Assembly (NCBI GenBank): GCA_964035545.1
Contig: OZ037767.1
Coordinates: 23,824,628 to 23,888,627, forward strand
DNA: 64,000 bases
Reading direction: 5' to 3'
Origin: Bugula neritina
Lineage: Eukaryota > Animalia > Bryozoa
A model generated the notes under the pieces. That model ran no database searches. It was not told the DNA's origin and worked only from the letters and a program-made list of their open reading frames with translations. The position numbers were made by a program, and so were the translations under genes. This document shows, piece after piece, positions 29,647-36,900 of this stretch; the stretch's first letter is position 1, and every line of letters begins with the position of its first letter.

Positions 29647-30104
29647 AGCTGTTCAACTCAGTTCCTACAGCTTCTCTCTGCCAGCTGTTATCCCTTCTAA
29701 TCGTGTTAGCTCTGTTATATTACTATAACTTGTAACCTAGTCTTCAGCTAGACTATGCTGACACCAGTCCTTGCAAAGTGATTAGTCAACTCAGCATACA
29801 GTAGTTAATATATGTTACTATTGTTATATAGTAATTCAATAGATTTATAGGCCTGTAGAAAGTTGACAGTTGGACAGCCCTCTAACTGCATTGTCAAACC
29901 AAGTAGCATTGATTCAATGTTGTTTTTCTCAAACAATGAACACAAAAGGCCTGTTAGCAAAATTAGGTACAGTAGGCTAATGGAGAAATTTTTATAGCCC
30001 AAGTTTCTATTTGCATATATCTGCAGCATTTTAATTTTTTATTCTAGCTAAAGTAGCAAAGAACTTCTAATAGGTAGCCTCAGTTTTGTGTTTATCTTCG
30101 CATA

Positions 30105-30212: not shown

Positions 30213-30514
30213 GAAGGTTGCTAGTTTTTCCAATGCACATCACCTTCCGAGTCGTTTAATTTTGATCAACTATATTAAACAAAACCTGAGTTACTAATTA
30301 ATCGGCATTTTCTTATTTCTAATAAACATTTCCACCTAACGAGTTTGAAAGCAGTGGTTGAAAAAATGATTTGCTAGAAACTTCTTACAAAAAATAAAAT
30401 TGCAACAGAAAATAGTATGCCAAAAATTTCATTATTGAAGATTTTATAATTGTCAAAGAGACAGCTTTTATGTCTGCCATGCAAAAGCATTTTACTGCCA
30501 TAAAGAAAATGTGA

Positions 30515-33500
30515 TTAGTGTTTATTTAACCAAGTCCTCAAAAATTGTTTAAACCGCAGAAGTTCAGCCTGAGTATTAGGATGGTCAAATTGCTTGGTCA
30601 GATATGTCTTGAGATCCTTTTCAGATGCAGTGAGAAACAACTTTTTCCTCTTCCTACAAGGCAACATACCACAAGTTTAGGGGAGGTTACAGATTTTAAG
30701 GCAGGCATTATGTAAGCCAGCATTAGATGAAGATCTCTGTAAACATCACTAAGTTATGTGTAGACAGCGAAAGCATCAGGAGATTGACAAACAAGTCAAC
30801 TTTATAAACACCAGGGGAGACAAGTCCATGCAATAAGGTAATCAATATGGTAATCTAACACAAAATATGGAACATCTTGGCTATATGCTAGTAAACAGTA
30901 CACCAGTAAATCAGAAGCTGATTTTAGTGCATGTATGCAATAGTTAAACTGCATTTTAGCTTGTTTCTAGCTGTTTTAGTGTATTTGTTAGGAAAGTTTG
31001 TACACTACAAACACTAAAGTGCTGTCCACTTGAGTGAAGTTTGCAAGAGATACATGGCTCAGAGCAGCTATACTAAGAGATGTACCTGTTGCTTAGATTG
31101 TCTTCAAACATGGCTTCCAGTGTCATTTGACTGCGTCTCCATGAAAAAATGTGAAGCTGCTGCTCATACCAGTCTAGAATGTTCATGAATGTTCTACATG
31201 AGAGACGCTCTACTTTACAGTCTTCTGGTATGAGGTCTGATAGGTAAATGGCTGAGAACAGCTCAGATGGCTTTACCTGAAGGGTATAGCAACTATTAAA
31301 GTAATAAAACTTGTAGTTGTTGCAATATCAAGTTTTGATTTTCCGATCCTAACCCTTCTTTACAACATCAAAACTAAAAGACTTAATTCAGTTTAAAGCA
31401 AAAAAAAATAATTTCAAAAATAATTGATTGCTTTCTACAATTTTCTAATTTTTATCTAGAAAGACTCATCATAGTTTATTGAAAGGCAACTTATTTCTAA
31501 CTACATTTCTAACATAATATCAATGTTCAACTTTACAAATCAAATGTATTTAACGTTTAATATACCTCGTCTGCAGTATTATGAGATGCTTTTGGTTCAT
31601 CAACTAACTTGTTGATTAGAAGGTTTTTCCAATCAGCATCCATTTGTGTCAAAGCCTGGTACGTCAGCCTTGATTTACCTTTATAATTATTGCAAGGCTA
31701 TTTTCTAAATATATCACAGTTGAAAGAACTATTTCTTGAAGTTATGCTACTCTCCTACACAGTGATATAGATTGTCAGTCTCAATGTTGTTGGTATTTAA
31801 AAATTCGCCAAGGTCAAAGTTCACCAATAGGCCTAATCATTTTAAAAATCAGATGCCCGGTAGTAACTATGAAATAATTATCCTGCACAATCAGCAACTA
31901 TTAAGTTCTTCAAAACACACCTCAAAGTTAAAGTCAAGTTTTAAGAAATGTTGAACTTCAACTTATGTGAATCAATTTTTCAAAAAAATGATTTAATCAT
32001 TGGGAAGTTAATAGAAATTTGCATTAATTATAAACACAAAGCCCAACCAACCTAGTTTTACATACAACATTTATTTGATAAACTTATTTAATGTAGGTAG
32101 TTAACAATCTTGAATATTATATATACATTAAATGAATAGGGAATTACCAAATTTTCTAACTCCGTACTGTTTAAGCTTATGTGCAGATAGCTCTGGGATA
32201 AGGGCATCACTGTCCACCACAGCCATATATGGGCGTTTGCTCTCAAGTGAGAGTTTAACTTCCTTCAACACTTGGCTGCTTCCATGGCAGTCCACAACGT
32301 TAATTGCAGTTTCTTGATCTAAAAGTTGCAACAAAGTTATATACTTAAATTAAGATACATTTTGTGATGTGAAGGAAATCCTTGAAACTATGTTTTTCTA
32401 ATAGAAAGAAAGCCTTGTGACCTTGACTTACAGTTGAAAATTTTAATTAAGTCAGGCATACAAGTTATATTATATATATTATAGTATACTGCACTAATAG
32501 TGAGACAAAATATATTATATAGTCCGCATGCTAGGTTAATACTTAGACATTATAACTAAAATATCAATTAGAAACCTGAGATGTTCAGCTCACCTTTGAG
32601 AAAAGTTTTCCTAGTCATGACTTTAGATACTGCCAAGACCTGCCAGCCACATGCTCCATATTGCAGTCAAAATAACTATCCACAGTGTCACTCGTTCAAA
32701 CACAACCAACCATTATATAACATATGCAACAAATATAATATACGCAGCATAAGGGAGCAGCTGTGGTCTAGGGGTTAGAACGTTTGCCTAGTAAGCACAA
32801 AGTCATGGGTTCGAACACAAACAAAGGCCATTGGTGATGTTAGGAAAAGCATTCAGTCATAATTGCTCCTGTGCCTCATCTGAATAAGTCCTTAGCCCGC
32901 TTTGACAAAAACCTCTTCCATCAGGGGTTCTCACGGGGATAGTGATGATAAACTAGTGTGAGCTTTTTTTTGTAATATATACAGCATAGGCTATAATACT
33001 ACATGTATATAACTCAATCTGTGCACAGCTGCTGTTTTAGGGTTTGTCCCCTCTTCAGCACAAAACCAAGTATTGTGACCCACACCTTTGCAAAAGAAGA
33101 AACGTATGTTTCTACTAAAGCAAATTCAAAAGGTGTGTAAATTCAAGCCAGAGAGCTCAAGTAATTCTAGGAATTACCAGCCATGCACAATATTTTACAC
33201 AAACAGTACACTAACAGGCAATAGATTCTGAGCTAAATTGCACTACCCAAGGTAGAGTGTAGACTATCCAATGGGCAATTGTATTTCTAATTCAACTGAA
33301 CATAATTTAATGATAGGAATATGAATTTTGAGTATTTGACTCAATAAAGACTGAGCTTACTTGGTGTTGCTGCTGAAGCCAACCAAGGTATTTGATGTGT
33401 TCAATTAGTATAGAAACAACTCTTGCATCAGATTTGCCTTCCACAAATAAAGGCACAAAATTATTACTCCTACAGATTCTTGTGTGAATTTTTCGAAAAG

Positions 33501-33833
33501 ATACCAACACATTAAGTGGTATAGAATGATAGGGGGAGTGCAGGAGAGATAGCATGGTGTATAGCTAGCACATAAAAATTACCAAAGGAATATATTTAGT
33601 TTCGGAAAGATTAATATTTCGGTATTTCTGACAAATTTACAAAACCTTTGTGATATGAAAGGTATTTTGAAGCAATGAGGCCAATGCATGTTTAGACAAA
33701 TAACTAGTTGATAAGTATTTTTAAGTACATGATAGTATATTTTAATAGAGCTTTTTAGCAAAACTGTATAAAGACAACAAAAAGCAATCACCACACATGA
33801 CTTCATTGAAGTGTTACAAAAATTATGTTTCAT
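30515..33833 (-). CDS. Divergent KsgA/Dim1-family protein, TFB1M/TFB2M-like (mitochondrial transcription factor B-like), about 360-410 aa
   Basis: Ten phase-compatible GT-AG exons: 33833 (or 33689)-33583, 33469-33361, 33232-33178, 33085-33003, 32639-32594, 32318-32148, 31832-31761, 31678-31566, 31276-31086, 30653-30515, with no internal stop. IPEDCKVERLSCRTFMNILDWY resembles recalled TFB1M [22 protein letters not shown], and NLYHCKSRLTYQAL resembles NVFQFRRKYCHRGL. The 5' end and the exon 4/5 junction are uncertain; the family call is by eye. Confidence 0.6.
32753..32971 (+). mobile_element. tRNA-derived SINE, best-preserved copy, in an intron of the TFB-like gene
   Basis: A-box-like TGGTCTAGGGGTT (32764), B-box GGTTCGAAC (32808-32816), central ggccattggtgatgttaggaaaagcattcagtc, 3' T-run. 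Two other copies lie in the window. Confidence 0.85.
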
Positions 33834-33895
33834 AGTTCAACGGCTTGCAGATCATCTGCCTGGTAGTTGTCCACCCTTGGAAACATTCTATACAT
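33830..33895 (-). other. 21-aa small ORF (MYRMFPRVDNYQADDLQAVEL) between the PHB2 stop and the TFB-like ORF
   Basis: The ATG lies 23 nt after the PHB2 TGA; its own TGA overlaps the downstream ATG (ctATGAaa). The ORF is plain in the sequence; whether it is translated is unknown. Confidence 0.4.
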
Positions 33896-33918
33896 TAGCA
33901 GTGTAAGACTGGCTCTCT

Positions 33919-36900
33919 TCACTTCTTCCTTTTCATGTCATCCACTGACTGATCAAACTCCTTCTCGTTGATATTCAGCATCAAGGTTGAGGCATTGAGG
34001 TACACTTTGTTCTGAGAGTTGGTTAACTACAATAAAATCATGAAAGATGAAAATGCGAGCACTACTCAAGTTACTTCTGGTGTAAAACCTGAGATTTATA
34101 AGTCTGTTGATTTTTTAGTCTGTTTCAGTTTATCCCCTCTTTCACTGGGATGATGAATAGAACTTGTCTCCAGATGAATTAATTAATCAGGGTTCCAGGT
34201 GAATCAAAGAGTTTGTTGCTATTATTTTCATTATTAATATTATAGCGGTGTATTGCTGATACCCACAGGCTGGCTTAAAGGACAAAGAAAATATAAAAAT
34301 TCTTGAGCCAATGAATTTGCTTCAGACAAACATTGCTTGACCGGCTAAACATCACATATACTGGAGTTGCCCGACCATCATACTTACATTGGAATTGTCT
34401 CACTCACCGTCTTAGCAATTTGCTGAGCAGCTCGTATCTTTCTCAGCTTCAAGTAGCCGGGGTTTTCTTTGACGGCCTCGCCTATCATCTTAGCAGCAGC
34501 AGCTTCTCCCTCAGCCTGCACGACTTTCTGCTGTTTCTCCTGCTTTGCTTTCTCCACAAAGAAATGAGCTCTTTGGGCCTCCTGCTGGGCCACCTGCTTA
34601 GCCTCCACAGCTGCAGTGTACTCCCGACCTGACGGATAGCAGTACAGAGCATATGAGTCAAGGGAGAGGACAACTACCAATTTGCAGAGTTATCCTCTGC
34701 CAACACAAAGTAGTACAGAGCTGACGTTTATCAGGACTTACCGAATGAAAGATCTGTGATAGAAACGTCATCCAGTATGATATTGAAGTCTTTAGCTCTG
34801 TTTACCAAATCTCTCCTGATGAGTAGAGAGACCTGCTGACGCTGCGTGATTAGTTGAGATGCATTGAACTTAGCAACTACTCCTTTAAGGACCTGCAAAA
34901 TAGGAACAGTAAAAAGCCTTTAAGGTTTTTTTAAACCTTTATAGAAAGTGAAATCTTTTTAATTAGCTGGGAATAATGGGATAGTTATGCATATGTACTT
35001 TTAAAGTTGTGATACTTAATTAAATTGCAATATAGTTTAAACCTTGAGAAAAACATTATAACTCAAGTTAACTCAACACCATAGACCGTAGCTGATTTCA
35101 AAAGTCATAAAACAAGTTATTCTTTTTGATTACCAATAAGGAAGCTTATTAAAGTCATAATAATCTAACCTAACTATGGACATGCAAAAGTTTTTTGCAA
35201 TAATTGAAGCATCTAATAGCCAGGCTGAATGGCCTTAAAATGGAGCATTTGCTAGGAGCAGCAGTGGTCTAGAGATTAAAGTATGGGCTTAGAGGTCATA
35301 TCCCTAGAAAAGGCCATTGGTGATGTTAGGAAGTGCATCTAGTCAAAAATGCTCCTGTGTCACATTTGAACAAGTCTTTACCTCGATTAAAAAAGAAACC
35401 TTTGCACCACGGGTTGTCGCAAGGATGGTGACTATAAACTCACTTATTTACTAGTGATACTTGCTAGCATAGCATACACACCTCATTAATAATTGAAGGC
35501 AAAACCCTGTCATCATAATCTGTACCAAGTTGCTGGTAGATATGAGGTAAGGCAGACTGATCTGGTCTAGCTAGCACTCTAAGTCCAATATTCACCATCT
35601 GCAAATCTAAAAACCAAAACATTGTGTACATAGACACGGGTGACAACAGTGGCAGCTTCAACACTAGAAACCTTTAATAGGCGGTGAGAAGAAATGCCTA
35701 CTAAAAATCACACTAGGCCCATGTTGACTTGAGAAAAAAACCGGTTGAACGAAACTAAAGAATAGCTTACCCTTGCTTCCTGTTGGAGAGACAATTTTCC
35801 TTGGTTTTGCACGAATGTCATATATAATAGGATACTGAAACCAAGGAACTCTAAAATTAGAAAATGTGTTTCTATGTAAAATGCTGAATTGATTTCAAAT
35901 TGGTCTAAATATGTCACGATAGCAACATTTCTACGCATATGCTTTGATATAATTTTTAACTTTAAGTTCATCAACTCAATTGCAGCTTTGCACAACAGCA
36001 AGAGTGCTATGAGCATGGGACAAACTCACAATGCTAAATTTGAAAATAACACATGTATACAGACCTAAAGTGAATGCCTTCCTTGTATATATCTTTCTGA
36101 ACACCAGATATCCTGTTAAACATAACAGCCCTGTGTCCACCCTCAACTGCAAATTTTAAAACAACACATGAGTTTAATCTAAACTCAGCTAAAAAAGTAG
36201 CCATGTTATAATTAAGGGGCCCTTTCATAGCTTTAGTTTAGTCTCTTGTGGCAAATTTTATTTTAAAAGTGCTTTATATCAACTTTATATCACTTTATTC
36301 CACTAATGCCTAAAACTTAAGACTAAGCTACAGAGTAAAACATTTTAGAACAATAACAATGTGAATGTTGGCATACTTATCATACTTATACTTATAGTGT
36401 TAGTTATACTAACACTAACAGTAACACTTACACTAGCAGGTAAAGTGGGTATGACTTAGGCTACGCAAAATTCAGAAACTAACCACATAACTGAATAATA
36501 ATAATAACAATAACCTGAAAGTGAATCACGTTAAACTTGATAATTATTTTTATTTACTAGCACATTTTTTATTTTCCCCTTTCACTTTCAGTTTCAAATG
36601 CTACGCCTACGGCTACAAGTAAAACTAACAGCAACTGATATCGATAATAATATTGTTATTATTATATTTATACATGTAATCAGAGTCACTAATAGTAATA
36701 GAAATCATAATGACAATGATAATTTTAAATCTAAATCATCACTGATAACTGTGTCTGTTGCCGTTGGTGTTAGACTTGAAGTTGAAGTGTTACTTCAATA
36801 CTTGCCTGTGTATACCGCTTGATAAATTGCGGCAGCAGCTGCACCTATAGCTCCAATTAAACCTACACCAACTCCTGCACCCTTTCCACCACGTGCTAAT

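Follow-up and report, generated by a model that had tools for sequence, protein, structure and literature searches.

The window analysed here is a stretch of 64,000 nucleotides (nt) of the Bugula neritina genome (contig OZ037767.1, positions 23,824,628 to 23,888,627 of the forward strand). On its minus strand, the prohibitin-2 gene PHB2 is followed by a gene of six exons and then by two racemase-like genes. PHB2 was recognized by its penultimate exon, which matches Prohibitin-2 in the PDB with E=3e-32 and prohibitin-1 only with 1.5e-15. A Band_7 match (E=4e-4) on another single exon of the gene indicates that the SPFH/Band_7 domain is present. The last coding exon of PHB2 (33919..34022, including the stop codon TGA 33921-33919) is 99% identical in a second B. 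neritina lineage introduced below, and the intron in front of it (34023-34403) is removed in an assembled RNA contig (record 5 of run X1, joint 34022>34404).

The initial annotation had placed a ten-exon gene of about 409 codons directly behind PHB2, on the same strand and overlooked by a listing of open reading frames (ORFs), and had read the pair as an operon-like unit of two mitochondrial genes. The existence of a spliced gene at this place was borne out, and the landmarks given for it are exact (TGA 33921-33919, ATG 33833, ATG 33689, and the tract TTTTTGTTGTCTTTATACAG at 33783-33764). The exon structure had to be revised. We read the three minus-strand frames and chose open segments with GT-AG borders. 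Six such exons join in frame without adjustment to give 284 codons plus TAA, and it is this chain, starting from ATG 33555, that holds up between lineages. This ATG lies on the same strand, 363 nt behind the PHB2 stop codon (which ends at 33919), and not 85 or 230 nt as assumed for the start codons proposed earlier.

For comparison, we used contigs L007 (a JGI contig), L008 (a Logan contig), L011 and L012, which are unspliced genomic sequences from 2016-era symbiont metagenome samples. They were reached via a protein search with exon 3, which found an ORF fragment with 96% identity (P0001), and via the exon-1 ORF; an exact look-up of the window's own exon-1 ORF returned no record. Since the non-coding identity to the window is only 84-90%, we infer that these contigs come from a sibling or diverged lineage of B. 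neritina.

The other lineage keeps all six exons together with every splice site, the reading frame and the stop codon. Exon identity is 88-96%, with indels only in multiples of three bases and none at all in exons 2 to 5, while the introns are 84-90% identical and contain many indels of 1, 4, 7, 13 and 17 bases, mostly not multiples of three. Exon 1 (33361..33555) comprises 65 codons, carries the motif FVEGKSD and ends at the donor CAA|gtaagc. Its ATG and donor are kept, its identity is 93.2%, and its sole indels are one deletion and one insertion of three bases; in the window, an in-frame TAG is found 9 nt before ATG 33555. Exon 2 (32594..32639) has only 46 nt but is required for the frame between exons 1 and 3; its GT-AG sites are kept and 44 of its 46 bases are identical. 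Exon 3 (32148..32318), which encodes ...VVDCHGSS...PYMAVVDSDALIPEL..., is the best-conserved exon, with 164 of 171 bases identical and five synonymous versus two non-synonymous codon changes. Exon 4 (31566..31678), in frame and with its GT-AG sites kept, agrees in 100 of 113 bases. The figures are 182 of 191 for exon 5 (31086..31276) and, without any indel, 126 of 139 for exon 6 in L008 (30515..30653, with the stop codon TAA at 30517-30515). An AATAAA (30526-30521) overlaps the last codons of exon 6.

Two further observations concern this end of the gene. L007 (in its 3026 region, equivalent to window positions 30647-30582) lacks 66 nt, or 22 codons, of exon 6 in frame. Neither L008 nor the RNA contig of this lineage has the gap, which is either a polymorphism or an assembly artefact. 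In the last intron, at 30746-30807 on the minus strand, there is a weak SNORD110-like C/D-box match (24.7 bits against a gathering score of 64, E=0.16), which is probably due to chance.

The gene is thus real, because splice sites and frame are kept while the introns take up frameshifting indels, and because all five junctions are in frame. It is single-copy in the B. neritina genome and fast-evolving. That the exons are chance open frames downstream of PHB2, with no functional gene behind them, is extremely unlikely. Such a reading could draw on the missing family assignment, on the very low RNA depth with two unspliced contigs in the region, and on the rather high proportion of non-synonymous changes (31, versus 20 synonymous, over the whole gene, with no stop codons). 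It would have to explain the five in-frame junctions, the retention of splice sites, frame and stop codon while the introns gained dozens of frameshifting indels, and a homologous exon in a different organism (see below). The comparative data already appear to refute it.

The same comparison removed several elements of the earlier model. The ORF of 84 codons that begins at ATG 33833, formerly taken as the first start codon, has GTG in place of the ATG in the other lineage, where indels of 1, 1 and 2 bases break the frame and stop codons are reached. ATG 33689, formerly the alternative start, is conserved but opens a short ORF (33689-33579) that ends before 33555 and has 36 codons in the window versus 32 in the second lineage. 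This ORF may at most serve the downstream gene as an upstream ORF, and its conservation is inseparable from that of the whole surrounding block of non-coding sequence. A candidate exon at about 33090-33020 was rejected as well, as it lies inside a repeat and the other lineage has its acceptor one base away. The third intron (32147-31679) contains two mini-exons, 41 and 58 nt long, that are in frame in the window; in the other lineage, the second of them is broken by a +1 shift and a TAA. These broken mini-exons illustrate that short GT-AG exons are easily over-fitted.

The repeat just mentioned is a dispersed, partly tandem element of about 172 bp in intron 1 (33000..33171), outside the coding sequence of the gene. 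A first look at the genome gave 508 candidates, and the 40 of these that were scored yielded 64 matches at 81-89% identity. Contig depth over the repeat is very high in both of the sequencing runs described below. Tandem copies also occur, spaced by about 270-290 nt, as on C9 near 3.146 Mb and on C8 near 2.722 Mb. A second, very abundant short interspersed repeat has copies in intron 1 (32784-32930) and in a PHB2 intron (35309-35440); at these copies contig depth reaches about 350,000 in one run (X1) and about 650,000 in the other (X2), with many chimeric 'joints' between the two copies. Just behind the first exon of PHB2, in its intron 1 (36380-36480 and about 36598-36760), AGT/ACT-type tracts with a period of three or six bases can be seen by eye. 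No comparable long periodic tract is visible by eye behind the start of the downstream gene.

We then considered the family of the protein, which had been labelled TFB1M/TFB2M-like. Exon-wise Pfam hmmscan, with E-values up to 10, gave no RrnaAD (PF00398) match for any exon, and a six-frame search of the whole genome (216,009,554 bases) with the same profile found nothing in this window (on C3). Smith-Waterman alignment of the single exons to those of TFB1M and DIMT1 from the same genome gave no score above the controls (500 shuffles, best p 0.066). With no PF00398 match at the gene by either of these searches, and with no pairwise similarity above shuffles either, the TFB1M/TFB2M identity was not upheld.

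PF00398 does match elsewhere in the genome, namely at DIMT1 on C4, at a KsgA-like gene on C137 and at a clear multi-exon TFB1M on C1 near 2.54 Mb. A second, weaker RrnaAD-like locus on C1 near 30.80 Mb was considered as a TFB2M candidate and turned out to be a generic S-adenosylmethionine (SAM) methyltransferase. The match on C137, a small contig, is strong (C137:16044-16696, 179 bits) and contains three in-frame stop codons; the locus could represent a second DIMT1/KsgA-like gene with introns, a pseudogene or DNA from outside the host.

The sole candidate for SAM motif I (E/D-x-G-x-G-x-G) is VVDCHGSS, which has a single glycine and corresponds to IFQCKGAT in the distant homologue P0003 described below. 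No exon with motif IV (N/D-L/I-P-Y/F) survives the lineage comparison. The TFB1M of B. neritina itself, in contrast, has EVGPGPGGIT and GNLPFNIS at these places.

It is very improbable, in our estimate, that the gene encodes a highly diverged TFB2M-like mitochondrial transcription factor of the KsgA fold, as first proposed. When the exons were compared by eye with the TFB1M and DIMT1 exons of the same genome and with human TFB2M, some collinear, motif-like resemblances could be found: motifs I and II have a counterpart in VVDCHGSS...AVVDSDALIPEL, RLS..Q in SRLTYQALTQ and F..RRK in IFSWRR. The N-terminus is presequence-like, the genome search with PF00398 finds no TFB2M elsewhere, and a protein-atlas lead for exon 5 points to an RrnaAD cluster, at a score of 0.76 that is at chance level. 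Against these points stand the lack of any RrnaAD match in the exons or the window and of any Smith-Waterman score above shuffles. The 284-codon model is also short of about 100 residues of the methyltransferase core and leaves no space for motifs III-VI, including a motif IV of the NLPY type, and both mini-exons that could have supplied the missing motifs are broken in the other lineage. Finally, a supposed G-loop with one glycine, next to an acidic residue that is replaced by glutamine in P0003, is unfit for a SAM-binding site. What the protein shares with TFB1M and TFB2M is a nuclear gene, a presequence-like N-terminus and a beta-loop-alpha-beta segment that ends in acidic residues followed by ..IP.L. 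It differs from them in the absence of profile or pairwise support, of GxGxG, of motif IV and of about 100 residues, and the true B. neritina TFB1M is on another chromosome (C1).

A different family was suggested by weak but collinear profile matches. Exon 1 matches the start of the DUF3226 profile (E=0.029-0.18) and positions 1-38 of OLD-like_TOPRIM_1 (E=0.097), and exon 3 matches positions 24-62 of 238 of DUF4435 (E=0.014-0.064) and positions 31-67 of 67 of OLD-like_TOPRIM (E=0.18-0.22). The matches of the two exons are independent and occur in collinear order. An OLD-like TOPRIM was also the top protein-atlas lead for exon 3, with a score of 0.88. The residue pattern of TOPRIM domains, in which a conserved glutamate closes strand 1 and a DxD closes strand 3, is present, with the glutamate at a strand end in FVEGKSD (exon 1, identical in the other lineage) and the DxD in VVDSD (exon 3), 64 residues further on.

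Homologues are few. Exhaustive phmmer with exon 3 returned P0001, which is the ORF of the other B. neritina lineage, P0003, which is 36% identical and comes from another organism, and P0002, a false match that was ruled out by BLASTP. The similarity of P0003 to exon 3 reaches z=20 against shuffles. The C, G, PY, AV, DxD and ALIP residues are invariant, as is a glycine before the DxD, and VVDSD of exon 3 appears as IDGD in P0003. Word-indexed searches based on the exon-3 alignment and on the ORFs of exon 5 and P0003 found no further homologues, and a scan of metagenome contigs with the exon-3 alignment found no relative. Upstream of the P0003 exon, no significant similarity to exon 2 was present.

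The first 38 residues of the protein contain no acidic residue, four arginine or lysine residues and three histidines, which fits a predicted mitochondrial presequence. For the domain behind this N-terminus, the best reading is a Rossmann-like alpha/beta domain of the TOPRIM type, which we judge about as likely as not; a TFB-like protein has a far smaller chance. Judged from the motifs, the TOPRIM reading suggests a metal-dependent nuclease or nucleotidyl-transfer protein rather than a transcription factor derived from an rRNA methyltransferase.

DUF4435 is the TOPRIM nuclease domain of AriB of the PARIS system, a protein of 35 kDa (PMC11464382). The protein encoded behind PHB2 would have about 250 residues past the presequence, near the total size of AriB, and shares with the TOPRIM nucleases (OLD, DUF4435 PARIS AriB and RNase M5) the glutamate and DxD motifs at strands and the weak collinear profile matches. 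In contrast to these proteins, its C-terminal two thirds match nothing, and the gene is an animal gene, contains introns and is possibly mitochondrial. Unlike OLD and DUF4435 systems, it has no ABC ATPase domain in the protein itself (neighbouring genes were not searched). We offer only tentatively the idea that a bryozoan lineage possesses a TOPRIM nuclease of the OLD/AriB kind that stands alone and is possibly imported into mitochondria.

The spacer between PHB2 and the downstream gene contains a block (33596..33830, minus strand) that is more conserved than its surroundings. The lineages agree in 228 of its 233 aligned bases (97.9%), versus 89.8% in the proximal PHB2 3' untranslated region (3'UTR), 93.2% in exon 1 and 84-90% in the introns. 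The block must be non-coding, because it has indels of 1, 1 and 2 bases. It is single-copy in the genome, gave no signal of RNA structure by folding (z=0.72) and has no match in Rfam. It probably comprises the end of the PHB2 3'UTR with the poly(A) region, and the next gene may also have its promoter and 5'UTR here. This interpretation is guided by the racemase gene, which also has a conserved block before its start. About 330 nt before the racemase start codon 29646 (29650-29976) are 90-96% identical between the lineages, above the surrounding non-coding DNA, so that promoter-proximal conservation is usual in this lineage pair.

The initial annotation had stated that no AATAAA occurs between PHB2 and the next gene. 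This holds true for AATAAA itself, but an ATTAAA at 33746-33741 had been overlooked. The other lineage has the identical hexamer, which is the sole AATAAA or ATTAAA from the PHB2 stop codon to exon 1 and the likely polyadenylation signal of PHB2; CA and a T-rich stretch (TTATTTGTCT) come after it. The acceptor-like pyrimidine tract ending in CAG (33764..33783) is conserved save for a one-base deletion in a run of T. Also conserved is an AG, placed 10 nt ahead of ATG 33555, which could be usable as a trans-splice acceptor if B. neritina trans-splices.

To these data we added the assembled contigs of two sequencing runs, placed on 30400-36399. Run X1 is RNA sequencing of the other lineage and X2 is identical DNA; contig depth is one mean figure per contig. 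In the X1 contigs, the introns of PHB2 are spliced out. One of them, 710 nt long, comprises the preceding PHB2 exon, the joint 34022>34404, the last exon, the stop codon, the whole spacer and exon 1 and extends to 33342, 19 nt beyond the donor of exon 1, although a de Bruijn contig that spans two genes does not demonstrate a single molecule. PHB2 exon contigs have depths of 323-541x and the 710-nt contig has 161x, whereas contigs on exons 2, 5 and 6 have only 2-5x, about 100-fold below PHB2. The mean of 161x would be obtained if RNA at the PHB2 level covered the first 210-355 nt of the 710-nt contig, which would place the drop in depth at about 33844-33702.

Support for splicing within the downstream gene came from the same run. 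Record 2 of X1 covers exon 5 (31085-31301) and ends at its donor. Record 1 covers exon 6 (30529-30652), starts one base inside the exon and has 30 extra letters that are not intron sequence; these unmatched letters indirectly support splicing from exon 5. Two other contigs of low depth are different, as one (32500-32649) is unspliced across exon 2 and the other (33083-33200) is largely repeat and may stem from other copies. Unspliced RNA of low depth at this place fits read-through or pre-mRNA. No joint at the 33764 acceptor was present among the 15 of 52 joints that were listed, and the RNA contig passes straight through this site. Nor did these 15 include a joint from PHB2 exon 1 to 33763, as the fusion by cis-splicing considered in the initial annotation would produce; the contigs were placed on a stretch that does not reach PHB2 exon 1.

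The proposal that PHB2 and the downstream gene are co-transcribed is thus supported insofar as RNA is continuous from the last PHB2 exon into exon 1, but a stable dicistronic mRNA is unlikely at depths of 320-540x versus 2-5x. An operon-like unit, in which one primary transcript is resolved by spliced leader (SL) trans-splicing or the downstream cistron is translated from a dicistronic mRNA, is quite unlikely. The genes are on the same strand with 363 nt from stop codon to ATG, one spliced RNA contig is continuous through the spacer, and the spacer is 98% conserved, also at the AG 10 nt ahead of the ATG. Two sites are candidates for the acceptor, ctag|CTATACACCATG at 33565/33564 and the CAG at 33764. 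A contig over two genes is, however, no proof of a single molecule, the depth gap between PHB2 and the downstream exons is about 100-fold, and the stretch between the genes contains a conserved ATTAAA followed by downstream elements. In C. elegans operons, the intercistronic region has the poly(A) signal first and the acceptor after it. The 33764 acceptor is upstream of the ATTAAA, which is the wrong order for an intercistronic region of this nematode type. Moreover, a literature search found no mention of a spliced leader in Bugula, and no SL-bearing loose end was seen among the contig ends listed.

Compared with the SL-resolved operons of nematodes, tunicates, flatworms, rotifers and chaetognaths, the PHB2 pair is similar in having same-strand neighbours, a short spacer and an AG near the downstream ATG. 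It is dissimilar in the roughly 100-fold difference in expression, and no bryozoan spliced leader was reported in the literature searched. The more specific version, in which PHB2 and a TOPRIM-like gene are co-transcribed and the spacer is the site where poly(A) cleavage is coupled to SL addition, strikes us as improbable. If it were true, it would establish an operon in Bryozoa, a phylum for which we found no report of SL trans-splicing or operons.

A downstream gene without a promoter of its own, expressed solely from PHB2 read-through as a conjoined gene with no spliced leader, is also unlikely. It would agree with the continuous RNA across the spacer, with the low RNA level downstream and, as a weak point, with the lack of a long six-base periodic tract behind the downstream start, as judged by eye. 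The contig, on the other hand, is unspliced past the exon-1 donor, as expected for plain read-through and not for a processed chimera. Translation of a second cistron behind an upstream ATG is inefficient, and here it would have to occur after 363 nt with the conserved upstream ATG 33689 in between. The conserved block, in addition, resembles the promoter-proximal conservation before the racemase gene.

We favor, with moderate confidence, a tight same-strand arrangement of two separate genes, PHB2 and the gene behind it, the latter with six exons, a TOPRIM-like product and its own promoter, and with some read-through from PHB2. Separate genes are preferred because the apparent drop in RNA depth coincides with the conserved element of ATTAAA, CA and T-rich tract. 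In this arrangement, PHB2 ends its coding sequence with the TGA at 33919, and its transcript would most likely be cleaved and polyadenylated some 15-25 nt past ATTAAA 33746-33741, near 33730. The downstream gene, single-copy and with one distant homologue so far, starts at ATG 33555, and its promoter and 5'UTR would probably lie within the 98%-conserved block that it shares with the PHB2 poly(A) signal. The continuous spacer RNA would then represent low-level PHB2 read-through or pre-mRNA that overlaps the 5' end of the downstream gene. Tandem genes in compact genomes, with overlapping 3'UTR and promoter and with read-through, resemble this pair in orientation, in the 363-nt spacer, in continuous RNA, in the large abundance gap between the genes and in a conserved poly(A) signal inside the spacer. 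The difference is that the spacer is here, at 98%, more conserved than the flanking coding exon, and that the start and poly(A) sites are predicted ones.

Several observations weigh against two separate genes with a TOPRIM-like second product. The 710-nt RNA contig is unbroken from spliced PHB2 into exon 1 and continues for about 19-28 nt into intron 1, and the RNA data consist of contigs, which carry no information on transcription start, poly(A) site or strand. The TOPRIM-type profile scores, at 12-15.6 bits versus curated cut-offs of 23-27, are all far too low. Six-frame genome searches with PF14491, PF24395 and PF20469 miss the window and give equally weak matches elsewhere. Exon scans with PADLOC and NCBIfam were empty, and PHROGs gave only sub-threshold matches to families of unknown function. 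Searches of the PDB with the exon-1 and exon-3 profiles found no TOPRIM chain (nor a TFB chain), and the exon-1 motif also resembled a Rossmann-like segment of TRPM3 in the PDB profile search, with an E-value of about 0.7. P0003 by itself matches no TOPRIM family.

The result is mainly one of annotation: ten exons become six, the TFB1M/TFB2M label is removed, and the bicistronic appearance is attributed to tight packing and read-through. Among 1.8 billion representative proteins, this fast-evolving protein has hardly any relatives. Its TOPRIM signature is weak yet consistent, and it would be unusual, if true, for an animal to have a TOPRIM protein that stands alone. The 235-nt spacer is a small test case for 3'-end and promoter sequence shared between neighbours in a compact bryozoan genome, and it would also be a useful one if trans-splicing in Bugula were confirmed.

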